From: Thecamonas trahens ATCC 50062
Lineage: Eukaryota > Protista > Apusomonadida
Assembly: GCF_000142905.1 (NCBI RefSeq)
Contig: NW_013657678.1
Span: 558,001 to 622,000 of the forward strand
DNA: 64,000 bases
Direction: 5' to 3'
The notes below the pieces were generated by a model. That model was not told the DNA's origin. It saw only the letters and a program-made list of their open reading frames with translations, and made no database searches. Position 1 is the first letter of the stretch. Each line of letters begins with the position of its first letter. Positions 27,548-63,650 of this stretch are shown here, in pieces. The translations under genes were made by a program, and so were the position numbers.

Positions 27548-28357
27548 TTACAGGCGAAACGTCGGCGGCGTCGGGAACTCAAAGTCGCCCGAGAGAACCT
27601 CCTCCGGGGGGAGCGTCTGAAGGTGCGCAATCTGCGCTCGGACGTAGTCGACCATCCGCGCGAGCTCGTTGGCCTCGACGTTGGGCGACATCGAGTACAA
27701 ATTGCGCCACAGCGCCGCCGCCAGCACTGTGTCGTCGCCGATAAAGCCCTCGTCGTAGCCGACAGCTGCGCCGTAGAACATGCCCAGCAGATCCTTGACA
27801 TTGCGCGCCAGAAGCGAGTCCTGAGTGATGCCTGTCGCCCGGATCCGAACCTCGACCTCCTCCCACAGCGAGTCAAAGAGCGCCTGCCGCATCTGCGCGC
27901 CATACGACCCCTCGGTCCGCATCCGTACCATGTACATCCACGTCTGCAGGACCACAAGCCCATACCATGCCCGGAAAGAGTCGTCTGCCGGCAGGCCCAC
28001 CCGCGCCCGAATCTGCACATCGTCGCCCATGGCCGAGAACGCCGCCATCAGCGGCTTGGAAGCCCGGATTGCCGTAGACTCGGTTGAAAACCAGCCGAGC
28101 ATCCGCCCCACACGCCGAGCCATCCGATACTTGAACGGGAGAGATGCCTCGTCCTTCACCTCGCCCACCGTCATCACCACCGGCCCGTCGCCGTCATGCC
28201 CACCTTCGCCGCACTTGCCCTTGCCCTTGCCCTTGCCCTTGCCCTGACTCGAGTGTACCGCCGCTGAAAAGGCAGACCCTGCAGATACCTTACTCATTCC
28301 CGCAACTAGCCTGCTAGCCACAGCACGCCCTGCCAACGTCGGCAATCTGTCCGCCAT
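27548..28357 (-). CDS. UQCC1: Ubiquinol-cytochrome c reductase chaperone (Cbp3/UQCC1)
   Basis: DSFRAWY...WMYMVRMR, FYGAAVGYDEG..DTVLAAALWRN, YVRAQ; presequence-like N-terminus. Confidence 0.88.
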   Translation of the reverse strand: MADRLPTLAGRAVASRLVAGMSKVSAGSAFSAAVHSSQGKGKGKGKGKCGEGGHDGDGPVVMTVGEVKDEASLPFKYRMARRVGRMLGWFSTESTAIRASKPLMAAFSAMGDDVQIRARVGLPADDSFRAWYGLVVLQTWMYMVRMRTEGSYGAQMRQALFDSLWEEVEVRIRATGITQDSLLARNVKDLLGMFYGAAVGYDEGFIGDDTVLAAALWRNLYSMSPNVEANELARMVDYVRAQIAHLQTLPPEEVLSGDFEFPTPPTFRL

Positions 28358-29234
28358 GCCCCTCACCCGCCATGTTGTACTCAGCTGTGAGGATGACGCG
28401 CCCCGGCTCAGCCCCCGCTCCGGCTCTGCCTACCCGGCTCTGCCTACCCGCAAGCCCACACTCCCCCTACCCATCCGCATGCCCATCTCAACTATGTCCT
28501 CCCTTGCGTACATCATTCGTGTGAACATGTCTCACCGATCGCTCCTCGAGTAGCAGATCGAGAGTGAGGTGGCGAACAAGGAGAAGGAGGGCGAGCTGGG
28601 TTGGCTCCGACCTGCTCCGGCCAAAGCCGCCGCCAGTGCTCGACTGTTTTCTCATGTGCTCGAGGGTAGCTGGTGCAGGTGCCAGAGTTGTTGACAAGCC
28701 CGATATCACATCCGTGGTATCTCTAGTTACTCTAGATGGTACACGATCGCCTGCTGCGCATCCGCTTGCCCACTATTGCTCACCCTTCTGATGCTGCTCT
28801 TCCTGCTCTCTGCCGCTGTGATGACCAGAAGCTGCATCGAAACATCCCATTGTCTTGTCTGATGCCCCACTACGTTCTTCATTGTATCAAATCATTCCTA
28901 TCTTTGATCTGCCTTTCCCCATGCCTTCCATCTCAACACATCAGCCAGCCAGCTAGCAGCCCAGCCCGCCCACAGTCACGCCAACGCCCAGCGCCCGCCC
29001 AACGCCAACGCCCACGTCAAGCCACCACTCTCTCCAGAGGACAGGGAGAGGGAGAGAGATGCTTCTCCGCGCGGGAGACAAGCCCGCTTTTAGGCGATAC
29101 CTGATGCGCACGCTTGCGCCCATGTATGTAACCTCTCTCATTCCCCTGCCCCGGGTAAAGTAAACTTTATTTTTTTTATATTGGACAACGGCAACGGACA
29201 TGGGGGGGCCAGACAACTTTCTTCCCTGCGTACT

Positions 29235-29565
29235 NNNNNNNNNNNNNNNNNNNNNNNNNNNNNNNNNNNNNNNNNNNNNNNNNNNNNNNNNNNNNNNNNN
29301 NNNNNNNNNNNNNNNNNNNNNNNNNNNNNNNNNNNNNNNNNNNNNNNNNNNNNNNNNNNNNNNNNNNNNNNNNNNNNNNNNNNNNNNNNNNNNNNNNNNN
29401 NNNNNNNNNNNNNNNNNNNNNNNNNNNNNNNNNNNNNNNNNNNNNNNNNNNNNNNNNNNNNNNNNNNNNNNNNNNNNNNNNNNNNNNNNNNNNNNNNNNN
29501 NNNNNNNNNNNNNNNNNNNNNNNNNNNNNNNNNNNNNNNNNNNNNNNNNNNNNNNNNNNNNNNNN
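29235..29565. other. Assembly gap (N run)
   Basis: Run of N. Confidence 1.
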
Positions 29566-29652
29566 CTCCCCCCCCCCCCCCCTCCGTCCACACACACTCA
29601 CTCAGGCCCACCTTCACACTCCCTACACTCCCTACCATTATGCTGATGACAG

Positions 29653-31883
29653 TACGGTTGCTGACCAAGAAACGCTCTCTGACTTTGTGGTGACGCTGCT
29701 GTCGGACGACAAGCCCGAGGCCGAGCTGCGGCGACTGTGCTTCTCAGAGACGCAGTTTTCCTTCAGTCCAAGACTGCTTGGTTCGTGGATACCATATTCA
29801 AGGCGCTTAAGTCGCGCTCATTTGCCGGTGGTCGTCCGGTTAATCATCCGCCGGCTTCTTCTACACCCTCTGCTCCTGGCCTGGCTGGCGCTGACGATGC
29901 TCAGCCGTCGAGGAAGCGTCCGCTCTCGCCGCCGCGCATCGATGAGATGAGCGGCCACACCGGTGCTACTGGCCACGATGATGATGTAGAGCCGCAGGCG
30001 AAGCGGCGCCATGGCCTCCAGGACCGCCTCGGCCCGCGCAGAGATGCCTCGTCCGCCCGCTCTGCTAGCCAGGAGATGCTGCGCTCGCGCGATCGCGAGC
30101 GGGGCAACCGTGGCGGTGACCGGGGTGACCGTGGCAACGACCGCCGTGGCGATCGTGGCGACCGCCACTCTGACCGCGACCGTGGTGACCGTGACCGCAG
30201 CGACCGCGGTGACCGACGTGGAGGTCGGTTTGACGACCGCGGCAGCGACCGACGTGGAGGTCGGTTTGACGACCGTGGCCCGCCGCCGCCCGGACCGCCG
30301 CCTCCAGGCATGCTTCCACCGCCTCCTACCGCTGCCAGTGGCGGAGCTGGCTTCCTCGACCCAGACGCCCAGCCGCCGGACGACATCCCGTTCGGTCCGG
30401 CCAAGACTAGCAACCGCGGCAGCGACCGTCGCGGTGGCGACCGCAGTGGTGACCGTGGTGGCAACCGTGACGGTGATCGCGGCGGACGCGGCCGTGGCGG
30501 CGATCGTGGCGGCGATCGCGGTGGCGATCGAGGCCGTGGCGGCGATCGTGGTGGCGATCGAGGCCGTGGCCGCGACTCGGACTCGTCACGGTTCTCCAAG
30601 TTGACACTGCGAGTGTACAACATTCCGGACGAGCTGCTGGCTGAGAGCCACCTGCGCGCGCACTTTGGCGTCTTTGGAGCTATTGTCAAGTGCACACCGA
30701 TCCCGCCCAAGTCATCGGCTTTTATCCAGTTCCTCACAGCCAAGTCTGCCAAGCGGGCGTACGAGTCGCCCAAAGCTGTTCTCGGCAACCGGTTCATCAA
30801 GCTCCAGTGGGCGTTTGCCAACGACGAGACTGAGGCCGGCAACATGGAGGCGTACATGGAGGCCGTGGCGTCGGGGGAGGCCGTGCCACAGGCTGCGCCG
30901 GCGTCGGCACCGCGGCGGCCCGAGCGCGCCGAGCGCTACGAGGGCTCGTCGCGATTCGACCGCCGTGAGCGTGATGAGTTCGCCGACGACGACGAGGTCG
31001 CTGCCGGCGACGATGGGCCGATCCGGGGCGCTGAGCCCGCAGCGGGTGCCACTGAGCTCGACGCCGCCGCCGTCAACGCCGCCAAGCTCGAGGCTGTCGC
31101 CAAGCGCAAGGCTGCGGCAGACATGCACAAGAAAAAAGTGGCGCTCCTCCGCGAGCGTCTCGCCAAGTACGAGAAGATCCTCAAGCTCATGCTCGCAAAC
31201 CCCAAGCTGCAAGTGCCCGAGAAGATGGCCGAGATCACTGGCAACGTTAAGGAGTTGCAGGCCGAGCTCAAGGCGCTGTTGGACTCGCCACCAGCCACTG
31301 TCGCGCCGCTGCCGGCTGCCACGAATGGGCGCGGGCGGGGCCGGGGCCGTGGGCGCGGGCGAGGCTAAAATGAACAAGTGGACGGGTAGAGATTGGGCGA
31401 GGCCGGGGGCGTGGGCGAGGCCGGGGCGGCTACCACGCCGGGCCTGCTCGCGACGCTCCGCCGTCCGGCTTTGTCATCCGCGGCCTCGGCGAGAGCGCCG
31501 CCGGAAACATGACCGCCGTCCGCAAGCACTTTGAAACGCTTGCGCCGATTCGGTCGCTCTCGTTTGACAAAAACGATCCACACGTGGCGTACATCCAGTT
31601 CCGCTCGCGCGAGGATGCTGAGTATGTCAAGGAGGCCGGCGCGACGTCGCTTGACGGCGCCACCATCGCGCTTGAGTGGCACTCGGGCCGGGCCGGCGCT
31701 ATTGGCAGTCGCAGCGGCAGCGGCAGCACTGCCTCGCGCGGAGAAGGCAGCAGCACGACGGCTGCCGCTTCTAACGACGGCGAGGAGGACCTCGTCGGCG
31801 AGGAGGAGGACGTCGACGACGACGACGAGTACGTGGTGGACGACGACAACGACCCGGTGGGCGAAAAGTCGTGGAAGCGGTAA
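29653..31883 (+). CDS. RBM26/RBM27-like RNA-binding protein (PWI + RRM + coiled coil + RRM); first exon missing, with breaks near 29757 and 31366-31394
   Basis: PWI-like LSDFVVTLLSDDKPEAELRRLC..FLQSKTAWFVDTIF; RRM LRAHFGVFGAIV..AFIQF..AVLGNRFIKLQW; RGG tracts; second RRM AYIQFRSREDAE. Confidence 0.82.
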
Positions 31884-31992: not shown

Positions 31993-34006
31993 CTACTGCG
32001 GCATGGGCATGCCGCCCGGAGGACCGCCTGCGGGCGGCTGCGGGGCCTGCTGGCCACCGGCCTGCTGCGGGGCGAGGCCCGAGACGATCTCGTCGATGCG
32101 GAGCAGGAGGGTGGCCTGCTCGACGGCGGTCTTGATGGTCTGGACCTTGACTGCGTACGGCTCCCAGATGTCGATGGTGGTCATGTCGATGAGCTCGCCG
32201 GTGATGCCGTTGACGCCCATGGTGGCGTTGTCGCCCGAGGCGTGGGCAGCGCGGAGCTCCGTCATGAGGCGAATGACGTTGGCGCCGCAGTTCTGGGCCA
32301 ATGTGCGCGGGATGACCTCGAGGGCCTCGGCGGCGGCGCGGTAGGGCCACTGCTCGATGCCCTCGATAGACTTGGACTTGCGGACGAGGGCCTGCGAGAG
32401 CGCCATCTCAATGGAGCCACCGCCGGGGACGACGCGCGGGTCAAAGACAACGTTGCGGGCAACGTTCATGGCGTCCTGGAGGTTGCGGTCGATCTCCTGG
32501 AGCACGTCCTTGGACGCGCCGCGGAGAAGGATGGTGGCCGCCTTGGGCGCCTCGCACTCGACAAAGAAAGAAAAGTAGTCGTCGCCGATCTTGCGGATGT
32601 CAAACAGGCCGCACCCGGTTCCGACGTCGCTCTCCTTGACCTCCTCAGGGCGGTGGCAGATGGTGGCGCCGACGGCACGGGCAATGCGGTTGTTGTCGGT
32701 CTTGCGAAGCCGGCGGATGACAGTCACGTTGGCCTTCATCAGGTAGTGCTGCGCCAGGTCAGAGCAGCCCTTCTCGGTGATGACAATGTCGGGCTTGAGC
32801 GCGAGGAGGTCGGCGCAGAGGCGCTGGACGTGGGCGTCCTCGAGCTCGAGGATGCGGTTAAAGTCGGCTTCGCCCGAGATCTCGATGTCGGTCTTGGACT
32901 CGCCCTTGATGTACTCGAGCGGGCAGTCGAGGAGGATGATGCGCGGGTTCTCGATGCGGCGGCGCATCTTCTGGTGCACAATGTCCTTGTTGATCATGAC
33001 GCCCGAGAGGACGCGCGAGTCCTCCATGGTCCCGCCGGGGATCTTCTCCACGCGCGCGTACCGCTTGATGTCGATCTCCGTCCGGCCGTCCTGCTCCAGG
33101 TGGACCGTGTTGACGGCGTCGAGCGCCAGGTTGCACATCAGCTCCATCCACCGCGACGAGAACTTGGTGCCCAGGCACGACTTGATGAGGTTCATCATCG
33201 ACGGCCGGTCGTTCGGGTCGATCGGGAACGAGAGCTCCTCCATGTAGTCGACCGCGTCGTCGAGCATGCGGCGGAAGGCCGAGCAGATGACAATCGGGTG
33301 CATGTTGCGCTCGAGGAAAAGCTCCGCAGACGCCATGACCTCACCGGCGAGAATCGCCACAGACGTCGTTCCGTCGCCGACCTCCTCGTCCTGCGTCCGC
33401 GACAGCTCGATCATCGACTTGGCCGCCGGATGCTTGACGTCGATCTCACGAAGGATCGCGTTGCCGTCATTGGTCATCACAATGCCGCCCATCGGATCCA
33501 GGATCATCTTGAGCATGGCACGCGGGCCAAGGCACGTCCGGACCACGTCGGACACGGCCTAAAGTAACGAGAGGGAGTGCCCAATGCGGTGAGTTGGGCA
33601 GAGTGTGGGCGAGTGAGGGCGGGGGAAGGGTGGGGGTTTTGGGGGGAGCGTCAGAACGGGGGATGGCGACCTGGGCAGCAAGTGGCACTCTTGCACCACC
33701 GCCAGAGGGCGGAATAAAAGTGGTACAAGCCGCACAAGTAGTAGAGATGGTAGCACATATTGCCAAGATCATGGACATGTGGTGGGAATGGATGGTGGTG
33801 GAAGATTCCCTGCTGTAGGTCGGAATATGTATGGATAGTGTCATGTCTGGCGCCAAAGTAGAAAAATGCTCAGAGCGGGCGAGGGGGGGGGCGGGGGCGG
33901 GGGGCAGGCGAAGGGGGATGGGGATACAGAGCAAGCAGACGTACCTTTGCAGCGGCAATGTTCGAGAGCTGAGCCTTGCGACCCTTCTCACTCTCCTGGT
34001 TGGTGT
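31993..34006 (-). CDS. CCT3: T-complex protein 1 subunit gamma; exons 34006-33945 and 33558-31993, first exon probably near 34115-34149
   Basis: GRKAQLSNIAAAK|AVSDVVRTCLGPRAMLKM across a GTAC...TAG intron; TNDGNAIL, GDGTTSV, IDIKRYARVEKIPGG. Confidence 0.96.
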
Positions 34007-34646
34007 CTGTTCTCGCTCAGCAGTCTGTGAGTTCTATCCAAAGCTATGCGTGTTGGGCGCGACCCATGGGGTCGGCCAGGGCTTGGCTGGGAGGAGGGGA
34101 GGAAGGGGAGGGACCTGGTTATTCAACGATTACTCCTTGGCGCAATCATTGAATGAATGGGATCATTCGCGCCGTCGAAAATCGCGCAATTCTACCTCGT
34201 CCTCACCCATACCAACCAAGGCCAATAGGGAGAGAGGGATATACAGGAGAGGAGGGGGAGAGAAGGGGGTAGTGTAAGGTGTGGGTGTGGGTGTGGGTGT
34301 GTGGGGGGGTACGTACTGAACACCATAACGTTGGGTTGGCGGCGGGGCATCATCTTGTTGGAGTGGTGCCGTCGAGTGTGCAGACTCCCGCCGTCTGCCG
34401 ACTGCCGATTGCTGGCCGACGCAAACAGCGGTCGCCGTCGGTAAGGAGGGTGGGCGGACGGGGGTGGGCGGAGGGGGGGGGAAGGGGGAGGGGGAGGGGA
34501 AGGGGATGGAGATCATGGGCGATGATGGGATGATGGATTGGAAGGGGGTGGGGGAGGGGGACCAGAGTGGAAAAGAGTTTGGAGATGATCAGCCAGGGGT
34601 TGCGGGGTGGAAGGGATGGAAGGGAGGGGTGTGGGGTGTGGGGGGA

Positions 34647-34973
34647 NNNNNNNNNNNNNNNNNNNNNNNNNNNNNNNNNNNNNNNNNNNNNNNNNNNNNN
34701 NNNNNNNNNNNNNNNNNNNNNNNNNNNNNNNNNNNNNNNNNNNNNNNNNNNNNNNNNNNNNNNNNNNNNNNNNNNNNNNNNNNNNNNNNNNNNNNNNNNN
34801 NNNNNNNNNNNNNNNNNNNNNNNNNNNNNNNNNNNNNNNNNNNNNNNNNNNNNNNNNNNNNNNNNNNNNNNNNNNNNNNNNNNNNNNNNNNNNNNNNNNN
34901 NNNNNNNNNNNNNNNNNNNNNNNNNNNNNNNNNNNNNNNNNNNNNNNNNNNNNNNNNNNNNNNNNNNNNNNNN
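34647..34973. other. Assembly gap (N run)
   Basis: Run of N. Confidence 1.
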
Positions 34974-35102
34974 ACACACACACACACACCACCACCACCA
35001 CCACCCACCCACCCACCCACCCCACCCACCCCCCCCCCCCACCCCCCCCCCACCCCCCCACCCACACACACATACACCATACACACGCATACACTGTGAG
35101 GT

Positions 35103-36326
35103 ATGTCTCAACTAACCCCAGCTCGCTCTCAGCCGGCGTACCTCCCGGCTTGGCTGGCACCTGGCTCAAAGGGCGCCAACAGGACACGCGACAGCGCGGC
35201 AGGCTCTCATCGACGGGGCGGGACTGGGTATGGGCACGATGACGGTGATATTCGCTCTCGGTTTGAAAAGGTCGAACAGAAGAGTCGGTTGGCTGCTCAG
35301 ACGGCAAGCTATGGGCAGAGTCAGGCAAGACTCTCCTCTGCGCCAGCATCATCAGCCAGCGCTGCGCCAACAAGCCACGGCGGAGGCTCGTCGCCGTCAC
35401 AGCGGATCTTTGCAGAGTCCCTCTCGCGGATGAGAGGCGAGGCTGTCCCAGCCTATGCACCGCCTAAGCTCGAACCGCTCCCACCGCGCACAGATCGCCC
35501 GCACATGCCGCCGAGGCAGCCGCTGGCATCAGCAGGGCTCGTGGCGAGCGCACGATTGACACGGAGGCCCGCGGCAGAGGCGAGCGAGCGGGTGCTGGCA
35601 AGCAGACGGGCGATGAGTCGCACAGCTGCGGCTGTCGATCCACTCGACGCCAGGCGGAGCAGACGTGGAGGCCCAGCACCAGGGCCACCAGCGGCGCCGG
35701 CGCTAGCAACACACATGGCGCTGCAGCCGCCGGTCGGCGCCTCGCTCAACACGGCAGCGTCGTCAACAGCGGTCCTTGCGGCACAGATTAGATCCGAGGG
35801 CATTCGGCTCTCGCCTGATGTGCGGAGCCAGGTGGCACGGACCCGTGCTGCAGTCTCAGCCGCCAACTCGCGCATTGCCGAGCTCGAGGCCCGCTCGCTG
35901 TGGGACACTCCGCCGCGGTCGCAGCCGCTCGGCTCGGTCCCGCACATCCTGGCTGTTGATGGGAGTGCACCGACGTTTGCCCAGCTGAAGCACGCTATTG
36001 CGGCCATGTCGCTCTCCCCCTCGCCTCCGCGTAGCCGGCCAGCAGCGGCGTCGGCGGCGCTGACCTCACTCGAGGCGCTCACACTCTCAGCCAACATGGC
36101 GGCCAGCTCAGCGGCATCCGCTGCCATCCGCTCGTCGCGGGTGCCGGCGGCACGGCCGCGGCCGCGGATTTCGCGGCGTCCGCCATCTGCTCCGTCGACC
36201 GCCCCGCTCCGCCCGTTCACCTCCGCCCGCCGAGCCGAGTTCTCGGCCGACGCCGCGCTGGCGTCGTCGCGGGCCGCAGTCGCCGCGTCGTCGCTCCGGG
36301 CCCCGCTCTCGCTCGCGGATCTTTAA
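35103..36326 (+). CDS. Hypothetical low-complexity Ala/Ser/Arg/Pro-rich protein
   Basis: 407-aa ORF filling the space between the gap and a convergent gene; no family recognised. Confidence 0.5.
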   Translation: MSQLTPARSQPAYLPAWLAPGSKGANRTRDSAAGSHRRGGTGYGHDDGDIRSRFEKVEQKSRLAAQTASYGQSQARLSSAPASSASAAPTSHGGGSSPSQRIFAESLSRMRGEAVPAYAPPKLEPLPPRTDRPHMPPRQPLASAGLVASARLTRRPAAEASERVLASRRAMSRTAAAVDPLDARRSRRGGPAPGPPAAPALATHMALQPPVGASLNTAASSTAVLAAQIRSEGIRLSPDVRSQVARTRAAVSAANSRIAELEARSLWDTPPRSQPLGSVPHILAVDGSAPTFAQLKHAIAAMSLSPSPPRSRPAAASAALTSLEALTLSANMAASSAASAAIRSSRVPAARPRPRISRRPPSAPSTAPLRPFTSARRAEFSADAALASSRAAVAASSLRAPLSLADL

Positions 36327-43828: not shown

Positions 43829-44549
43829 ATGAGCGAAGCACAAAGTCAGACAGTGGAGCATGAGGGCGTCCAGGTCACCGCAGTCTCACAGGGTCTGATG
43901 AAAGCTGTACGTGCCGTGAGTGATGGGGTGGGGGGGGGGGGGAGGGTCTTTGCTGAACATGATCATGTCCATGACCATGATCATGATCATGATCGCGATC
44001 GCTCTGCACCGGCGACAGACTTATGACGCATGGCATGGGGTACAGCAAGGACCTGACGGCGAGTTCAAGGTCAGCGGATACCACGAGTTCAAGGTGATCA
44101 TGATCGCGATCGCTCTGCACCGGCGACAGACTTATGACGCATGGCATGGGGTACAGCAAGGACCTGACGGCGAGTTCAAGGTCAGCGGATACCACGAGTT
44201 CAAGGTGACTGGGGTGAACACGACGACGACGACCAAGACGCTCAACGCGGCACTTGTGCTGACATCTGAGGCAGCTGCGGCGGCCGAGGCCGAGGCCAGC
44301 AATGAGGCCGGGGCGAGCGAGGGCGGCGACGGCGGCGACGGCAAGAGCGAGGAAGCCGAGGCGAGCGGCAAGGGCAAGGGCAAGAGCGGGAGTGCGGGCA
44401 AGAGCGAGCCGGGCGAGGTCGGGCGTGCAGCAGTTTACATGGAGATCGAGTCGGGCAGGGAGGTCGTGCTCACCATTGTGGTGGAGACCAAGAACCAGGA
44501 GCCGTTCGATGCATTCCAGATTGCAGTCGAGGCCGTGTATGAGTTCTAG
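43829..44549 (+). CDS. Small hypothetical protein; predicted intron 43907-44018
   Basis: ATG 43829, GTACGT donor at 43907, CAG acceptor at 44018, in frame with ORF 43920-44549. Confidence 0.45.
43984..44208. repeat. 111-bp exact tandem duplication
   Basis: TGATCATGATCGCGATCGCTCTGCACC...TTCAAGG begins at both 43984 and 44095. Confidence 0.92.
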
Positions 44550-56053: not shown

Positions 56054-59000
56054 CTACAGGATGAGCTGCTGGATGGGAGTGACGACGATGTCGGATGCAC
56101 CGCCCATCTTCAGCTGTGGGATGAGGGTGGTGAGCGCCTTTTGCTGGACGGCGGTGCGGACGGCAAAGGCGTGGCCGCCGTAGAGCTGCGCCACGGTCGG
56201 GTTCTTGAGCGCGGGGAGCGAGGGGATGAGATCCTCGAGCAGGCTCTCGTCGACGTTGAACTCGATCATGACGCGCGAGCGGCCATCGAGGGCCGACTTG
56301 AGGAGGAGGACGAAGCGATCGATCTCGGCCTTGCGGACCGGGTCGGCAAGCGCGGCCTTGGACGCCACCAGATACGTCTCCGAGGTCATAATGACGTCGA
56401 TGATGGAGAGCCGGTTAGCCTTGAGTGTCTCTCCGGTGGCAGTGTTGTCGATGATGACATCGGCGTCGTCGGGCACGTAGACCTCGGTCGCACCGCCGGT
56501 CTTGATGTACGACGCGTCGAGACCGGTGTCCGCGATCCACTTCTTGGTGAGCGTCACGTACTCGGTGGCGATGACAAGCTTGCGATCGGTGGGGAGCGAG
56601 CCGCCGTGGGCAGCGAGGAGGGCATCCGGCGCGGCGACGACAACCCGGACCGGGTCCATGCCGGTGGCAAAGTATGGCACCACCTCGCCGCCGGCCTCAA
56701 GCTCGGCGATGAGGTCGACGCCGGCAAAGCCCATGTCGCGCTTGCCGGCCTGGATGAGCCGGACCGTGTCGCGCGGCTTGAGCAGCTTGACGTCCCATCC
56801 GTCGAGGTTGATCGACGGCCGCAGCGACCGGGCCCGGATCTTAACCTTGATTCCACCGTCTGCGAGGAGTGAGAGGATGTTCTCGTTCATCCGGCCCTTG
56901 GGCAGCGCAAACTTGATGACAGCGCCGCTCTCGTTGGCGGCCGGGAGGGCGACGCCTGCAGTGCCGACGGCGCTGGCCGATCCGGCCCGCGAGCGCGAGA
57001 TAGATCCGCTCTTCTCGGTGCCGACCAGCGCGAGGCGTGCTTTGGCCGCAGCCGCGTGGCCGAGCAGACCCTCCATCGACGCGAGCGCCACCGCATCGGC
57101 CACGATGTCGCCCGCGGCACCCATGTCCGTCATGTGGACAAAGGTCCGGACCCGGAGGAAGGTGAGGACCGAGAGGCCGCCAAAGGCCTTGGCGCTCCCA
57201 CCGGTTGGCAGCGTGTGGTTGACGCCGACCGAGTAGTCGCCGAGCACCTCGGCCGAGCCGGCGCCCACAAATAGCGATCCGTAGTTGTCCAGCTCCTCAG
57301 TCAGCCGTGCCAGATCATGTTTGCCCCCGTCAACCTGGATCTCCAGGTGCTCGGGCGCAAGCGCGTTGGCCACCGCCACCGCCTCATCCATGTTGGCGGC
57401 AATGACCGAGAACCCGTTGTTGGCGAGCGCGGTCGTCGCGGTCGCTGCGTTGGGCCCAAGCTCACCAGAGGCGATCTGGGAAGCGAGCGCAGCATTGACC
57501 GCATCGACCACGCACGCATCGGGCGTGACGAGGATCGGCACGGCGGCGACGTCGTGCTCAGCCTGGGCGAGGAGGTCGGCGGCGATGAGCCCCGGATCGG
57601 CGGATGCGTCGGCGAGGACCAGACACTCAGACGGGCCGGCGAGCATGTCGATGGCAACCGAGCCGGCCACGAGTGACTTGGCGGCGGTGACCCACTTGGA
57701 TCCTGGACCGACAATGGCGTCGCAGGCCGGCACGGCGCCCGCGCCGTAGGCCATGGCGCCGATAGCCTGGGCGCCGCCGATCGTCAGCAGCTTGTCGACC
57801 TTGGCGACGTGGCAGGCGGCCAGAATGATGGGCGCAGGATGCGGCGACGCGACAATGACGTCGGCGCAGCCGGCGACCCGCGCCGTCACAGCCGTCATGA
57901 GCACCGTCGACGGCAGCGGGTAGCGGCCACCGGGCGCGTAGCAACCTGCGCGCGTGACCGGCGAGATCGAGTGGCCGATGTCGCCGCCGGCGATGGAGAG
58001 AGTGAGCGGGTGAAGCGACTGCTTCTGCGCGAGCGCAAAGGTCTCGATCCGCCCGGCGCATCGGCGGAGCACCTTACGTTCGGCCTCGGGAATACTCTCA
58101 TAGGCTGCGGCAAACTCGGCTGGCCCGAGCACGTACCGTTGCTCATCCCGCCAGTACTCGTCTGCATCAGAGAGGTCGCCAAACTTGGTCGCGAGCTCGA
58201 GGAGCGCCGACTCGCCATCGGCTTCGATGCGCGCAAGGATGGACCGTGCGACCTTGAGCGCTTCGGCATCAACAGCATCGACGTACGCCGAGGTCTTGCC
58301 GGACAAGACGTCCGCGGCGGCGACTTGCCGGAGCGCTGGCGTGGGAGAGCCTGTGGGTGCTGGTGCCGGGATGGACGGCCCCGAGCCGCCATCGACGGCG
58401 GCGGGCTCGAGAGGGGCAGCCTTGGGCTTGACAGCGCCTCCGCGGCGCTTGACGTAGAGTGATCGGGATGCAAGGTGGCGCTCGACGTCGACGAGCGGGA
58501 TGCCAGCCTTAACGAGGCCGACCATGACAAAGTAGAGCACGTCGGCGGCTTCCCAAGTGGCGGCGGCGGGATCAAACGGTTGGGCGGCGAGGGCCTCGAT
58601 GTACTCGCCGGCCTCCTCCTCGATCTTTGCGGCGAGCATGGATGGCTTGTCAAAGAGCTTCTTGGTGTACGAACCCTGCGGGGCGCTCTCCAGCCGGGAC
58701 ACGAGGGTGCGGTAGAGATCGCCGAGCGCATCGAGCGAGCCGCCGGGACTGGGCACGCCGGCAAAGCACGCGCGGCGCGAGGGGACATGGCAAAAGCCAT
58801 TGCCATCCTGCGAGACGACAAAGGTGAGAGCATCGGCGTCGCAGTCGAGGGCAATGGCGTGGAGCGTTTGGGTTGCGCCCGACGACGCGCCCTTGCGCCA
58901 CAGCCCGCGGCTCCGCGACCAGTAAACGCCAGCGCGCTCATCGACAGCGGTGCGGATCGAGGCCTTTGACGAGTAGACTTGGCCGAGGAGCTGGCCGCGA

Positions 59001-61216
59001 CAGTCAACGACGACGGTGGGGAAGAGGCCGTCGGCGCGATCCGAGACGAGCGGGGCGGCGATGGCGTCTCCAAGTGAGAGCTCACCCGAGTAGAGCGACA
59101 TGCCGACCTGGCCCATGGCGCCGAGGGCGTAGAGGTCGGCAAGGTCAGCAGGCGAGGTGATGCCGCCGGCAATGGTGAGCGAGAGCGGGAGGCCGAGGGA
59201 AGTCGAGGCGGCAGCAATGACGGCGACAAGGTCGGCAATGGCGGAGCGGTCGATGCCAACCATGCGGCCCTCGCGCTCGACAAAGGTGACGAGGAAGCCG
59301 GAGCAGTACGGCGCGAGGGCGGTGACCCGGTCTGCAACCGACTCGCCGGTCTTGGTCGTCCACCCGTCCACCACTACCTCGCCGTGAACGGCGTCGAGGG
59401 CGACGAGGACGCGATCGCGCGGGAGCTGGGCGAGGAGTTCGGGGCTAGCGGCGGTGCCGATGATGACCGAGCGGGCGCCGGCCTGGAGGTAGTCGAGGGC
59501 GGCGTCGACGGAGCGAATGCCACCACCGACTCGGCATGGGTAGCGCTTGCAGAGCTCGACGATGGCGTCCTTGTTGGAGCCACGCGAGAGGGCGGCGTCG
59601 AGGTCGATGACCGCGATCTCGCCGGCGAGGGCAAACTTGGCTGCAAGGGCGTCGAGCTCGCTGCCGGCGTCGATCTTGAGCTTCTCGGGATCACCGCCGA
59701 CAAGCTGGACAGCACGGCCGCCCATGAGGTCGATGGAGGGAACGACGGCCTGCGGCGGCGGTGAGAGGTGGAGCTTGGTCGCGGCGTCGGGTGCAAACGA
59801 CGGCGGGCGGACCGAGAGCGACGGATCCAGGAGCGAGAGGGCCGATTTGATCGAGCCGACGGTGTAGTCGCCGTAGTGGAAGATGGATGCCGCGAGGAGG
59901 GCATCGGCGCCGGCGGCGATGGCGGCGACCATGTGCTCCGGCGACGAGGCGCCGCCCGAGGCAACAACCGGGATTGAGACGGCGGCGGAGACGGCGGCGA
60001 GGAGCTTGGTGTCGTAGCCGGAGCGGGTGCCGTCGCGGTCAAACGAGGTGAGGAGAATCTCGCCGGCGCCGGCGGCGGCGGCGCGGGCGGCCCACTCGAT
60101 GGCATCGATGCCAGTCCGCTCCGAGCCGGACTTGACGACAACCTCCCAGCCGGAGGCCGTCGAGTCAGCCGAGCGTGCGTCGACGGCAATGACGATGCAC
60201 TGCGAGCCAAAGCGGGAGGCGAGGCGGGAGATGAGCGCCGGGTCACGGACGGCGGCGGTGTTGACGGCGATCTTGTCGGCGCCGGCCTCGAGTAGGGCCT
60301 GGGCCGAGTCGACGGAGCGGACGCCGCCGCCGACGGTCATGGGGAGGAGGACAGAAGCACGGAGGGACCGGATCATGTCGAGGGCGGTGGCACGGGCTTC
60401 GGGCGTGGCGGAGATGTCGAGAATGACCAGCTCGTCGGCGCCCTGGGCCTCGTAGGCGCGGGCAAGCTCGACGGGATCGCCGGCGTCGCGCAGGCCTTCA
60501 AACTGGACGCCCTTGACTACGCGGCCGTCCTTGCAGTCGAGGCAGGGGATGATGCGGCGGGTGTGCGGCGGGGCGATGGGATCCGGGACCGGAAGCGGGG
60601 CGCGCGCGAGGTCGACAAATGCCTTGAGGATGGCGAGACCGAACGAGCCCGAGAGTTCAGGGTGGAACTGGGTGGCGAGGACGTTGCCGCGCTGGAGGGC
60701 AGCGACGTAGTCGGAGCCGTAAGAGGCGATGGCAGCGGACCAGCCGAGCGGAACGGATCGGAGGCAGAACGAGTTGGAGAAAAAGGCGTAGCCCGGTCGA
60801 GAAATAATGTCGCCTGCAGCAGACGCCATAGGCTTGACCTTTGCCCATCCCTGCTGTGGAATGGGCCGCGAGGCGACGTTGTCAAACTTGACGACGTTGG
60901 CGCTAGCCAAGACACCGAGGCCATTGACGCCGGGAGACTCGTCAGAGCAAGCAGCGAGAATTTGGAGACCGACGCAAACAAACAAAGTAGGAAGGTTGCT
61001 AGCGAGACGGGCCTTGATGGCATCGATGAGGCCAGGGGACGAGGCAAGAGCGTCCATAGAGGCACCAAAAGTGCCCACGCCGGGAATAACAACCAGCGGA
61101 GCGCTGGCTACGTCAGCCGACTCGATCGAGGTCCTTGGCTTGGCGCCAGCCCGCTTGAGTGAGGCTGCCACAGAGGCCACGTTAGCCACTCCCGTACATA
61201 CAATCACAGTGTCCAT
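56054..61216 (-). CDS. hisH-hisF-hisA-hisI-hisE-hisD-hisG: Seven-domain histidine biosynthesis fusion: HisH (~61216-60600), HisF (~60565-59835), HisA (~59750-59050), HisI (~59045-58765), HisE (~58735-58440), HisD (~58335-57030), HisG long form (~56920-56054)
   Basis: HisH: PGVG, CVGLQ, QFHPE. HisF: RIIPCLD, GADELVILDI, LTSFDRDGT, ASIFH. HisA: PSIDLMGGRAVQL, VGGGIR. HisI: YWSRSR.LW.KG.SSG, DCDADAL, CH..CF. HisE: SYT, KIEEEAGE, EAADVLY. HisD: YAPGG, AGPSE, QAEHD, APEHLE, GDY..G.NHTLPT. HisG: ALPKGR, ATEY, GATE, DNTATGETLKAN, plus C-terminal regulatory domain. Confidence 0.96.
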   Translation of the reverse strand: MDTVIVCTGVANVASVAASLKRAGAKPRTSIESADVASAPLVVIPGVGTFGASMDALASSPGLIDAIKARLASNLPTLFVCVGLQILAACSDESPGVNGLGVLASANVVKFDNVASRPIPQQGWAKVKPMASAAGDIISRPGYAFFSNSFCLRSVPLGWSAAIASYGSDYVAALQRGNVLATQFHPELSGSFGLAILKAFVDLARAPLPVPDPIAPPHTRRIIPCLDCKDGRVVKGVQFEGLRDAGDPVELARAYEAQGADELVILDISATPEARATALDMIRSLRASVLLPMTVGGGVRSVDSAQALLEAGADKIAVNTAAVRDPALISRLASRFGSQCIVIAVDARSADSTASGWEVVVKSGSERTGIDAIEWAARAAAAGAGEILLTSFDRDGTRSGYDTKLLAAVSAAVSIPVVASGGASSPEHMVAAIAAGADALLAASIFHYGDYTVGSIKSALSLLDPSLSVRPPSFAPDAATKLHLSPPPQAVVPSIDLMGGRAVQLVGGDPEKLKIDAGSELDALAAKFALAGEIAVIDLDAALSRGSNKDAIVELCKRYPCRVGGGIRSVDAALDYLQAGARSVIIGTAASPELLAQLPRDRVLVALDAVHGEVVVDGWTTKTGESVADRVTALAPYCSGFLVTFVEREGRMVGIDRSAIADLVAVIAAASTSLGLPLSLTIAGGITSPADLADLYALGAMGQVGMSLYSGELSLGDAIAAPLVSDRADGLFPTVVVDCRGQLLGQVYSSKASIRTAVDERAGVYWSRSRGLWRKGASSGATQTLHAIALDCDADALTFVVSQDGNGFCHVPSRRACFAGVPSPGGSLDALGDLYRTLVSRLESAPQGSYTKKLFDKPSMLAAKIEEEAGEYIEALAAQPFDPAAATWEAADVLYFVMVGLVKAGIPLVDVERHLASRSLYVKRRGGAVKPKAAPLEPAAVDGGSGPSIPAPAPTGSPTPALRQVAAADVLSGKTSAYVDAVDAEALKVARSILARIEADGESALLELATKFGDLSDADEYWRDEQRYVLGPAEFAAAYESIPEAERKVLRRCAGRIETFALAQKQSLHPLTLSIAGGDIGHSISPVTRAGCYAPGGRYPLPSTVLMTAVTARVAGCADVIVASPHPAPIILAACHVAKVDKLLTIGGAQAIGAMAYGAGAVPACDAIVGPGSKWVTAAKSLVAGSVAIDMLAGPSECLVLADASADPGLIAADLLAQAEHDVAAVPILVTPDACVVDAVNAALASQIASGELGPNAATATTALANNGFSVIAANMDEAVAVANALAPEHLEIQVDGGKHDLARLTEELDNYGSLFVGAGSAEVLGDYSVGVNHTLPTGGSAKAFGGLSVLTFLRVRTFVHMTDMGAAGDIVADAVALASMEGLLGHAAAAKARLALVGTEKSGSISRSRAGSASAVGTAGVALPAANESGAVIKFALPKGRMNENILSLLADGGIKVKIRARSLRPSINLDGWDVKLLKPRDTVRLIQAGKRDMGFAGVDLIAELEAGGEVVPYFATGMDPVRVVVAAPDALLAAHGGSLPTDRKLVIATEYVTLTKKWIADTGLDASYIKTGGATEVYVPDDADVIIDNTATGETLKANRLSIIDVIMTSETYLVASKAALADPVRKAEIDRFVLLLKSALDGRSRVMIEFNVDESLLEDLIPSLPALKNPTVAQLYGGHAFAVRTAVQQKALTTLIPQLKMGGASDIVVTPIQQLIL

Positions 61217-61775
61217 GTTGTTGCGCGAGCGAGACGTTGCTGAAAAAGAAGTTGCAGTCCGCTAGGTTAGCGGAGACGAGGAGTGTGGCGACGTGCGGAG
61301 GGATCGTGGCGACGCGTGCGGATGGCATTTTTTTAACCATCCGCAACTTTCCATTCGAATGTTCTAGCTCTGCTACCCCTACTCACACCTCCTGCAAGCG
61401 GGAGAGAGCTTGCAAAGGAAGGAAAAGTGAATGCTGAGGTGCAAGGAGCAAGGATAATGCCAAATGTTGGAGTGTGGTACGTGTAAAGGCGGCAGTCAAC
61501 GGAGGGGATGAGTATGATGTTCAAGATCACGAGCAAGAAAGTTAGCTTAGAATTGGCGGTGGAGCCGCTGTCACAGCGCAGGCCACTCACTCACATACCT
61601 GTCTGCAGACCAGTTGTATGTGGGCGGGGTGAAGTGGGGCAAAAAGAGGGGGGAGGGGGACACCGTGGGCAGATACTCATAGTGGTATGTTGGTGGGACT
61701 GGGATGCTGCGGGTGGGCGCACTGGCTGGCTGGCTGGCTGACTGGCTGGCTGGCTGGCTGGCGTGCTGGTAATCG
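61217..61775. promoter_or_regulatory. Putative bidirectional promoter between the two his genes
   Basis: 559-bp, lower-GC spacer between two divergent ATGs. Contains an imperfect direct repeat GTGGCGAC(GC)GTGCGGA and a (GCTG)n tract. Function inferred from position only. Confidence 0.55.
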
Positions 61776-63650
61776 ATGGCTCAGATGGCGAGGTTCATTC
61801 GTGACGACCTCGCGAGCGCCCGCTACAAGGGCGTAGAGTCGATCGAGGCGCTGGCTGACGAGCTCGGCATTGCGGTCTCGTCGATCATCAAGCTCAATGC
61901 CAATGAGAACCAGTACGGGGTGCCCGAGGCGTGTGCGGCAGCGATGAGCGCCGCCATCAACGTCACCACCCATGTGTATCCGGATCCAAGCCAGGCCAAG
62001 CTCCGGGGTGCCGTGGCAGAGCTGCATGAGCTCGGGCCCGAGTCTGTTGTTGCCGGTGCTGGCTCGGACGACATTCTCGACATTATTCTGCGCGCGACTG
62101 CGCCCAAGATTGTGGCCTACGCGCCGCCGACCTTTGGCATGTACTCCTTCCTCGCCAAGGTCAACGGTTCGATCGAGCAGGTGCTCATTGAGAGAACGCC
62201 CGAGTTTGGCGTCACGGCCGCGTCCGTTATCGCGAGTGTGAGCGAGGCGCTCGCTGACGGCGGCCACGGCGTCGTCTTTCTACCATCGCCCAACAACCCG
62301 ACCGGCAACCTGGTGGCACTCGGCGAGGTGCGTGCCATGTGTGCCGCGCTCCCGAACGCCATCATTGTTCTCGACGAGGCGTACATCGACTTTGCACCGG
62401 CCGGCGCCTCTGCCGCGGGCCTCATCGGTGAGTATGACAACCTTGTTGTCTGCCGCACCTTTTCCAAGTGGGCCGGCCTCGCCGGGACACGGATCGGGTA
62501 CTGCCTCGCCGATCCTCAGCTTGTTGCCACCTTTCTCGCCATCAAGCAGCCGTACAACGTCAACTGTGCGGCAGAGGCAGGCGCGCTGGCGGCGCTCGGC
62601 GCGCGCGACGACATCCTGGCGTCGTCGGTCTCGCGGCTCATTGTCGAGCGGCGCAACGTGTTTGTCCAGCTCGCAGCGCTAGCGCCACTGGTAGTCCCGG
62701 TCCCGTCGTCGGCCAACTTTGTCCTCGCGCGCATTGCAGACACCGCGCCGCTGACTGCAGGCGAGCTTGCGTCTGCGCTCCGCGCCGCCGGCATCCTCAT
62801 CCGCTACTTTAACAAGCAGGGCGGCGACCTCGAGGCTTACATCCGGATCTCGGCCGGTAAGCCGGCAGACACTGCGGTAGTGATAGGAAAGATCCGTGAG
62901 CTGCTGGGAGCCGCACCCGCGCCACCGCCGGTTCTCGCCAACCCAGGCATCGAGGCGGTGCTCTTCGACATGGACGGTGTGCTCGCCGACGTCGGCGCCT
63001 CGTACCGGGCGGCCATTGTCGCCACGGCGAAAGCGTTTGGTGTCACCGTCACCGCCACCGACATCGATGCGGCCAAGGCGGCCGGCAACGCCAACAACGA
63101 CTGGCTGGTAACCCGAGCGCTCATCGCCGCCAGCGACGACGCGCCGCAGCCGCTGCCGACGCTCGACGAAGTGACTTGTCAGTTTGAGGCGCTCTACCAC
63201 GGCGATGGCAGCACCCGCGGCCTCTACGCCAACGAGACACTCGTGGTCGCAGCCGACTTGCTCCACTCGCTCAAACATGTTGCCGGGCTCAAGCTCGCCG
63301 TCGTTACCGGCCGCCCGCGCGATCCGGACGCCACCCGCTTCCTTGACGACTTTGGCCTCACCGGGCTCTTTGACGCCGTCATCACCATGGACGACGGCCC
63401 GGCCAAGCCATCGCCGGTCCCGATTCAACTCGCGCTTGACGCACTCGGCGTAGCACCAAGCGCCGCCATCATGCTCGGCGACACGGTCGACGACGTCGCC
63501 GCCGCCCTCGCCGCCTCGGTCCCCGCGCTCGGCGTCATCCCACCCGGCGCTGGCGAGCCGGATGGCCTTGCCAAAGTCCTCACGCTCGCCGGCGCAAGCT
63601 ACGTCATGGGCCCGGGCTGCTTCGAGCTTGCGCACCTGATCACCCGCTAG
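61776..63650 (+). CDS. hisC: Histidinol-phosphate aminotransferase fused to a HAD-IA hydrolase (putative histidinol-phosphate phosphatase)
   Basis: HisC: KLNANEN, YPD, GAGSDD, PNNPTG, DEAY, RTFSKWAGLAGTRIGY. HAD from ~62945: LFDMDGVLAD, VVTGRP, KPSP, MLGDTVDD. Confidence 0.93.
   Translation: MAQMARFIRDDLASARYKGVESIEALADELGIAVSSIIKLNANENQYGVPEACAAAMSAAINVTTHVYPDPSQAKLRGAVAELHELGPESVVAGAGSDDILDIILRATAPKIVAYAPPTFGMYSFLAKVNGSIEQVLIERTPEFGVTAASVIASVSEALADGGHGVVFLPSPNNPTGNLVALGEVRAMCAALPNAIIVLDEAYIDFAPAGASAAGLIGEYDNLVVCRTFSKWAGLAGTRIGYCLADPQLVATFLAIKQPYNVNCAAEAGALAALGARDDILASSVSRLIVERRNVFVQLAALAPLVVPVPSSANFVLARIADTAPLTAGELASALRAAGILIRYFNKQGGDLEAYIRISAGKPADTAVVIGKIRELLGAAPAPPPVLANPGIEAVLFDMDGVLADVGASYRAAIVATAKAFGVTVTATDIDAAKAAGNANNDWLVTRALIAASDDAPQPLPTLDEVTCQFEALYHGDGSTRGLYANETLVVAADLLHSLKHVAGLKLAVVTGRPRDPDATRFLDDFGLTGLFDAVITMDDGPAKPSPVPIQLALDALGVAPSAAIMLGDTVDDVAAALAASVPALGVIPPGAGEPDGLAKVLTLAGASYVMGPGCFELAHLITR

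Follow-up and report, generated by a model that had tools for sequence, protein, structure and literature searches.

The 64,000-nucleotide stretch of the apusomonad Thecamonas trahens ATCC 50062 analysed here (contig NW_013657678.1, positions 558,001 to 622,000 of the forward strand; hereafter the window) carries two adjacent, divergently oriented genes of histidine biosynthesis. The list of open reading frames (ORFs) gives their exact coordinates: a heptafunctional fusion gene encoding 1720 amino acids (aa) lies on the minus strand at 56054..61216, and a gene for a bifunctional HisC-HAD protein of 624 aa lies on the plus strand at 61776..63650, with a divergent spacer of 559 bp (61217..61775) between them. 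Each gene is a single ORF and already exists as a public gene model on scaffold GL349434.1 (680,870 bp, assembly GCA_000142905.1); the model of the fusion gene is identical to our ORF, and that of HisC-HAD begins at the second ATG (61785), giving a protein of 621 aa and a spacer of 568 bp. The first-pass annotation of this DNA had proposed such a head-to-head pair set among unrelated genes. The ORF coordinates and the domains described below bear the pair out, and the neighbours are indeed unrelated to it, with a GDI/REP-like gene on the left and a RING/IBR gene on the right, just beyond the window edge.

Domains were called with Pfam and NCBIfam profiles, and the scores given here are compared with the curated cut-offs. 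The minus-strand protein begins with HisH glutaminase (aa 4–202, 60611..61207; TIGR01855, 135 bits, cut-off 105), HisF cyclase (aa 219–461, 59834..60562; TIGR00735, 339 bits, cut-off 294.6; HisF chains of the PDB at E values of 1e-85 to 1e-70) and HisA isomerase (aa 490–718, 59063..59749), the last of which corresponds to a second His_biosynth stretch and is covered over aa 490–718 by NF010113 and NF003156. These are followed by HisI cyclohydrolase (aa 726–819) and HisE pyrophosphohydrolase (aa 830–919), together at 58460..59041 (PF01502, PF01503; TIGR03188, 62.8 bits, cut-off 42.7), by HisD histidinol dehydrogenase (aa 981–1395, 57032..58276; TIGR00069, 376 bits, cut-off 243.8; PDB histidinol dehydrogenases at about E 1e-74), and by a long-form HisG ATP phosphoribosyltransferase with its C-terminal regulatory domain (aa 1434–1718, 56063..56917; TIGR00070, 125 bits, cut-off 75.8; TIGR03455, 75.5 bits, cut-off 40; PF01634, PF08029). 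All seven domains stand in one uninterrupted frame, far above the cut-offs, in the order H-F-A-I-E-D-G, which is the Acanthamoeba-type architecture. In an alignment of five such fusions, residues C81, H185 and E187 of HisH, which we take to be the glutaminase catalytic triad, are invariant, as are many active-site blocks.

Full-length relatives of this protein are few in the databases and comprise three metagenomic proteins of the same architecture, P0002–P0004 (70%, 51% and 48% identity, the last value being that of P0004), and a transcript of the amoebozoan Paramoeba atlantica (P0005), whose protein is 51% identical to the Thecamonas fusion. Rice et al. (2018) described a single Acanthamoeba protein of 1682 aa with the same seven activities, verified by polymerase chain reaction (PCR) and complementary DNA (cDNA), and reported 51% identity between its HisD part and Thecamonas trahens (PMC6029752); Acanthamoeba is a prototroph that makes its own histidine, and its imidazole glycerol phosphate dehydratase (IGPD) is a separate gene (PMC6029752). 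The seven-activity megafusion is therefore already known and not new. As far as the published description allows a comparison, the two proteins agree in their size of about 1700 aa, in the identical order of the seven activities (HisH/F, HisA, HisI, HisE, HisD, HisG) and in the separate IGPD, whereas the Acanthamoeba gene is intron-rich and the Thecamonas gene, with its 1720 codons, has no intron. The Acanthamoeba paper is silent on HisC, on the phosphatase and on the gene neighbourhood.

The N-terminal part of the plus-strand protein (aa 27–376, 61854..62903) is a HisC histidinol-phosphate aminotransferase. Its TIGR01141 score of 268.9 bits falls slightly under the cut-off of 276.55, with 276.4 bits for the corresponding protein of L001, a metagenome contig described below, 283 for Stygamoeba and 296 for Hondaea. 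The closest PDB structures are the histidinol-phosphate aminotransferases 8bj4 and 8bj1 (E 2e-60), followed by 15 more HisC entries, and the FSK motif, whose lysine is presumably the pyridoxal phosphate lysine of HisC, is aligned and conserved. The C-terminal part (aa 392–588, 62949..63539) matches the HAD-IA phosphatase model TIGR01548, a “hypothetical equivalog” of NCBIfam, with 166–169 bits against a cut-off of 140.2 and is a predicted histidinol-phosphate phosphatase. The HAD domains of L001, Stygamoeba, Hondaea and one bacterial operon also score above this cut-off, and four sequences, including a bacterial one, show no variation in HAD motifs I–IV (DxDGV, T, K, GDTxDD).

The ORF starts of both genes coincide with conserved catalytic-domain residues. 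Because both proteins open directly with such residues, neither an intron nor a targeting peptide is needed, and the enzymes of both genes are presumably cytosolic. It had also been claimed that the pair supplies every step of the pathway except IGPD. All other enzymes could be placed, and tblastn found no IGPD in the window or within 10 kb on either side of it, so this claim stands for everything but the phosphatase step, which hinges on the identity of the HAD domain. If this domain is a histidinol-phosphate phosphatase, the pair covers nine of the ten histidine reactions, with IGPD encoded elsewhere.

HisC-HAD fusions are also found in Amoebozoa (Stygamoeba, Echinamoeba, Clastostelium), in the choanoflagellate Didymoeca and in the cryptophytes Hemiselmis, Chroomonas and Baffinella. 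In the stramenopiles Hondaea, Aplanochytrium and Cafeteria the protein carries IGPD as a third domain, unlike that of Thecamonas. All share the combination of HisC with TIGR01548, are 38–48% identical to the Thecamonas protein and form one strongly supported clade with it. Other protist fusions are A-IE-D-C-HAD in Protostelium nocturnum, IE-D-C in Arcella and H-F-G in Mastigamoeba, and the combinations H-F-A-IE-IGPD, C-HAD-D and C-HAD-IE occur as well; with so many domain combinations, the histidine enzymes of protists must have been joined and re-joined in numerous ways. A public protein of Ascoidea rubescens (P0211, 1414 aa) unites nucleoside-transporter domains with a HIS4-type IE-D part; it represents a true fusion or else two genes merged in the public model.

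The same head-to-head pair is present on L001, a 13.5-kb metagenome contig of a relative, with a spacer of 415 bp and aa identities of 70% for the fusion and 59% for HisC-HAD. No homologue of the three other genes of L001 occurs within the window or the adjoining 10 kb, and none of four neighbours of the Thecamonas pair has one on L001. Since all flanks differ, the his pair is the sole conserved piece of gene order between the two. By our estimate, two given genes would be neighbours by chance with a probability of about 2x10^-4 if the gene count is put at roughly 10^4. A different arrangement is seen in another eukaryote (L168, 3904–8043; NCBI GCA_014466255.1, GC content 37%), where a HisC-HAD-HisD gene lies tail-to-tail with a separate hisG, 118 bp apart; eukaryotic his clustering is therefore recurrent but variable.

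The spacer of the Thecamonas pair must contain both promoters and both 5′ untranslated regions (UTRs). A (CTGG)n microsatellite of 10 copies, detected by Tandem Repeats Finder on the plus strand at 61722..61762, ends 14 bp before the HisC-HAD start codon and is probably part of the HisC-HAD 5′ UTR; the L001 spacer lacks it and has instead a long G/A-rich tract beside the start of the fusion gene. The GC content of the spacer falls to 0.52 at 61300–61599. The spacer has no match in Rfam, the Rfam and tRNA scans gave no match at the his locus as a whole, and a scan of the spacer for sigma-70 promoters and terminators, which is irrelevant to a eukaryote, gave none either. The hexamer CACGTG occurs twice in the L001 spacer and is absent from that of Thecamonas. 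An 85-aa ORF with a GTG start (61333–61590, minus strand) lies wholly within the spacer and is most likely spurious.

It should be noted that head-to-head start codons 559 bp apart fall within the criterion of about 1 kb used for bidirectional-promoter pairs, and shared regulation of the two genes from a bidirectional promoter, as the first-pass annotation proposed, would be plausible on general grounds, though the spacer sequence lends it no support. Two genes of one pathway placed head-to-head across a short control region are also known from yeast GAL1-GAL10 and Aspergillus niiA-niaD. For these, shared activator sites and co-induction have been demonstrated, whereas no conserved site was found for the Thecamonas pair.

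A search with the fusion alignment fetched 80 metagenome and 80 genome loci, all of which are bacterial operons, and no further eukaryotic fusions. They come from Phycisphaerae and other Planctomycetota, Gemmatimonadota, Myxococcota, Krumholzibacteriia, some Spirochaetota (Treponema) and others. The order H-F-A was found in all of the approximately 140 fetched loci, the bacterial ones most similar to the fusion, that span hisH, hisF and hisA, save L081 (H-A-F), and complete loci read hisG, hisC, (HAD), hisB, hisH, hisF, hisA, hisIE, hisD; examples within L005–L164 are L013 (5067–12196), L041 and L088–L093. In enterobacteria the genes classically run G-D-C-B-H-A-F-IE. It is the order of the fetched loci that sets H by F, F by A, IE by D and C by HAD, and these are the junctions of the protist fusions and of fungal HIS7 and HIS4.

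In these bacterial loci, stops and starts overlap as in an operon, and ORF inspection revealed real fusions, namely hisC=HAD of 588 aa and hisA=IE of 433 aa. By a test for a common frame free of stops, C=HAD is fused in 30 of the 80 genome loci, and H=F and A=IE=D are fused in many others. The Thecamonas proteins are 46–58% identical to the bacterial operon genes. The likeness extends to the orders H-F-A-IE-D and C-HAD, to the fusion of TIGR01548 with HisC and to the long HisG, and the bacterial variant already contains partial fusions (H=F, A=IE, A=IE=D). It is, in contrast, a polycistron on one strand that includes hisB and begins with hisG, whereas Thecamonas has two genes on opposite strands, no hisB, a C-terminal hisG and all domains fused. 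The same operon is present on a GC-rich long-read metagenome contig (L004, 4085–11403), where the genes are split over many frames with several high-scoring segment pairs per domain. Its predicted protein P0007 (1474 aa) was considered as a bacterial five-domain fusion and rejected, the call being unreliable on a contig so ridden with frameshifts.

In the HisC-HAD tree (all trees were unrooted), a long stem leads to a single clade of the eukaryotic proteins (SH-aLRT 100), in which Thecamonas and L001 are sisters. Four bacterial proteins with HisC only, P0116, P0118, P0126 and P0134 (one of them labelled Dehalococcoidia), branch within the eukaryotic HisC clade, a placement that may hint at a transfer of HisC between eukaryotes and bacteria in either direction. 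In the concatenated H+F+A+IE+D tree, the protist fusions are grouped (98) among the bacterial operon sequences, and fungal HIS4 stands elsewhere. In the approximately unbiased (AU) test of the IE+D columns, a single clade of all eukaryotic rows was not rejected (p = 0.64), and the constrained tree was 15 log-likelihood units better. A recent, separate horizontal origin of the protist fusions apart from fungal HIS4, as the quick concatenated tree would have it, was discarded for want of AU support. Fungal HIS7 (HisH-HisF) and HIS4 (HisI-HisE-HisD) have the same domain sub-orders as Thecamonas, and the common IE+D clade with the protist fusions is the one tested above; unlike the Thecamonas fusion, they are separate, unlinked genes without HisA and HisG. 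HIS2, the phosphatase of fungi, is a member of the unrelated PHP family.

According to Fani et al. (2007), such fusions arose in eukaryotes, and hisHF then moved to delta-proteobacteria. Given the many unfused H-F-A operons across several phyla, the direction from bacteria to eukaryotes is at least as likely. We tentatively consider, as a possibility short of an expectation, that a single hisG-hisC.HAD-hisB-hisH-hisF-hisA.IE-hisD operon gave rise to the his genes of protists, and perhaps also to HIS7 and HIS4 of fungi, with the Thecamonas pair as a surviving linkage. If this were true, gene fusion, together with a single inversion giving rise to a common promoter region, would have made the operon workable in a eukaryote, and the published eukaryotic origin of hisHF- and hisIED-type fusions, passed on to delta-proteobacteria, would have to be revised. 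The fusions HisC-HAD, HisH-F and HisA-IE-D, seen in the literature as eukaryotic inventions, do occur in bacteria.

On this basis, we read the locus, with a probability of about 60%, as a genuine two-gene histidine cluster in which fusion replaces the operon, the two transcripts are probably switched together and the linkage may be inherited in part. Fusion into two reading frames would be the main substitute for an operon and would guarantee joint, equimolar synthesis: the first gene would yield a cytosolic polypeptide with seven activities, including a feedback-type long HisG, and the second an aminotransferase joined to a HAD phosphatase. The head-to-head placement would bring both promoters into one nucleosome-scale region of 0.56 kb, and because they fall within one such region, we infer that the two transcripts are probably switched together. 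Since the domain order of the two genes reproduces the bacterial operon order, the linkage may in part go back to an ancestral block resembling an operon, and not to assembly under selection. The “eukaryotic equivalent of the his operon” of the first-pass annotation is not an operon in the strict sense: the genes diverge on opposite strands, which makes a polycistronic transcript impossible, and the fusions themselves take the place of the operon.

Several observations weigh against this reading. The spacers of Thecamonas and L001 cannot be aligned; they have 37 7-mers in common, compared with 27 +/- 6 in dinucleotide shuffles, and common 9- and 10-mers are at or below chance. The Gcn4-type site TGACTC, TGA(C/G)TCA and TATAAA are absent from both spacers. 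According to the public annotation of the surrounding DNA, the two genes of the next divergent pair, at a distance of 6 kb, are 504 bp apart, and tandem and convergent gaps range from 4 to 412 bp; with a neighbouring divergent pair at 504 bp, a divergent gap of 0.56 kb is ordinary in this compact genome. The conserved linkage in relatives that the pair would lead one to expect was found in L001, where all flanks differ, and not elsewhere: HisC-HAD adjoins Ku in L003, another eukaryote, stands beside unrelated genes in Hondaea and Cafeteria, with no his neighbour in any of these three, and lies alone in a long intron-rich gene in Baffinella. At the P0004 locus (48% identity, contig of 9237 bp), the divergent gene upstream is truncated to 188 aa, and the N-terminal 188 aa of HisC, used as a query, retrieved no fragment from that contig. 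The linkage is thus not general among eukaryotes, and a single adjacency shared by two genomes of moderate relatedness may reflect nothing more than inertia. In addition, the pair is not simply collinear with the operon, C-HAD being inverted, hisB gone and hisG at the other end.

Much of this would be accommodated if the pair were a historical leftover, that is, if one operon-like block, or one old rearrangement in the ancestor of Thecamonas and L001, had left two genes with independent promoters side by side by inertia. We regard this explanation as possible, if doubtful. It accounts for the collinearity of the domain order with hisG-C(=HAD)-B-H-F-A=IE-D, for spacers that are devoid of a conserved motif and typical in size of divergent pairs here, and for the lack of linkage in most other eukaryotes examined, and L168, with its C=HAD=D gene convergent with hisG, suggests that his genes are often neighbours that drift apart. 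However, Thecamonas and L001 have retained the pair in the same orientation while differing in every gene that flanks it, and the passage from operon to pair needs an inversion, the loss of hisB and the relocation of hisG. Moreover, a long stem separates the eukaryotic HisC-HAD clade from the bacterial fusions, so any operon ancestry is ancient and neutral retention less likely. A fragment of a bacterial his operon mis-joined to a eukaryotic scaffold by assembly error or contamination would fit the identity to bacterial operon genes given above and the high GC content, but we give this explanation hardly any credit. The uninterrupted fusions occur in full in no bacterial locus, and the pair lies 56 kb inside a 681-kb scaffold, among the eukaryote-only GDI/REP, RING-IBR and myosin genes, with NAD kinase and an eRF3/HBS1-like GTPase as further eukaryotic genes around it. 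The GC content of the two his genes equals that of their surroundings, the independent contig L001 holds the same pair, and transcripts of the same architectures are known from Paramoeba and Stygamoeba. Contamination was rejected on the GC content, the eukaryotic neighbours and the scaffold context.

The remaining alternative concerns the HAD domain, which could be another phosphatase, for example of phosphoglycolate or a sugar phosphate, and the pair would then be short of two pathway steps. The solved structures nearest to the domain are phosphoglycolate phosphatases and beta-phosphoglucomutases, its scores of 54–57 bits with the HisB-N model TIGR01656 (cut-off 84.15) show that it is not of the HisB-N type and also count against the cluster reading, and the literature found holds no TIGR01548 member with a documented assay. 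Nevertheless, the domain is consistently found joined to HisC, both in bacteria and in at least four eukaryotic groups; in bacterial loci it is fused or adjacent between hisC and a hisB that encodes IGPD only, and in eukaryotes it is also joined to IGPD, HisD, HisIE or A-IE-D. From this operon context and these recurrent fusions, the HAD domain is most likely a histidinol-phosphate phosphatase, and we consider a different substrate improbable. A precedent is nmHisN of Nitrosopumilus, a HAD enzyme encoded between hisC and hisB, for which specific histidinol-phosphate phosphatase activity has been proven experimentally (Kinateder et al. 2024, PMC10804674). Enzymes of the nmHisN/toHisN type have one large helical cap and a fingerprint Y-(D/R)-x-x-I after the nucleophile motif, with Y24, D/R25, K/R56 and D/E64 as the fingerprint positions of nmHisN, and homologues of nmHisN are reported in Euryarchaeota and delta-proteobacteria (PMC10804674). 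The Thecamonas domain has an invariant S-Y-R-x-x-I at a matching distance from the nucleophile, which corresponds to the first part of the fingerprint only and was matched by eye; the likeness to nmHisN lies in this cap motif and in the gene position between hisC and hisB, which the bacterial TIGR01548 members have in common with it. A different HAD lineage would, on this reading, do the same job as the HisB-N enzyme.

We see modest novelty in the gene pairing, in a likely identity for the phosphatase and in a domain order collinear with one type of bacterial operon. Eukaryotes rarely cluster genes of primary metabolism, and for bacteria the histidine pathway is the textbook case of an operon; in Thecamonas, a pair of neighbouring genes would cover nine of its ten reactions. 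The pair is a compact natural test of operon replacement, in which fusion would secure stoichiometry and a shared promoter region might set the timing, and the match between fusion and operon order is a testable hypothesis on the origin of eukaryotic his fusions. In many protists and bacteria the histidinol-phosphate phosphatase has long been missing, and the recurrent HisC-TIGR01548 fusion is a pointer to it. Because the pathway is absent from animals, fusion enzymes of this kind have already been proposed as anti-amoebal drug targets.

Elsewhere in the window, two tRNA-Leu(CAG) genes with identical scores lie 180 bp apart on the plus strand (509–589 and 689–769) and form a tandem duplicate. 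The GC content is 0.50 at 28001–30000 and 0.54 at 34001–36000, compared with 0.60–0.69 over the rest of the window, and a (CCAC)n array is found at about 34981–35069. A perfect tandem duplication of 111 bp, in two copies with 100% identity, occupies 43984–44208.

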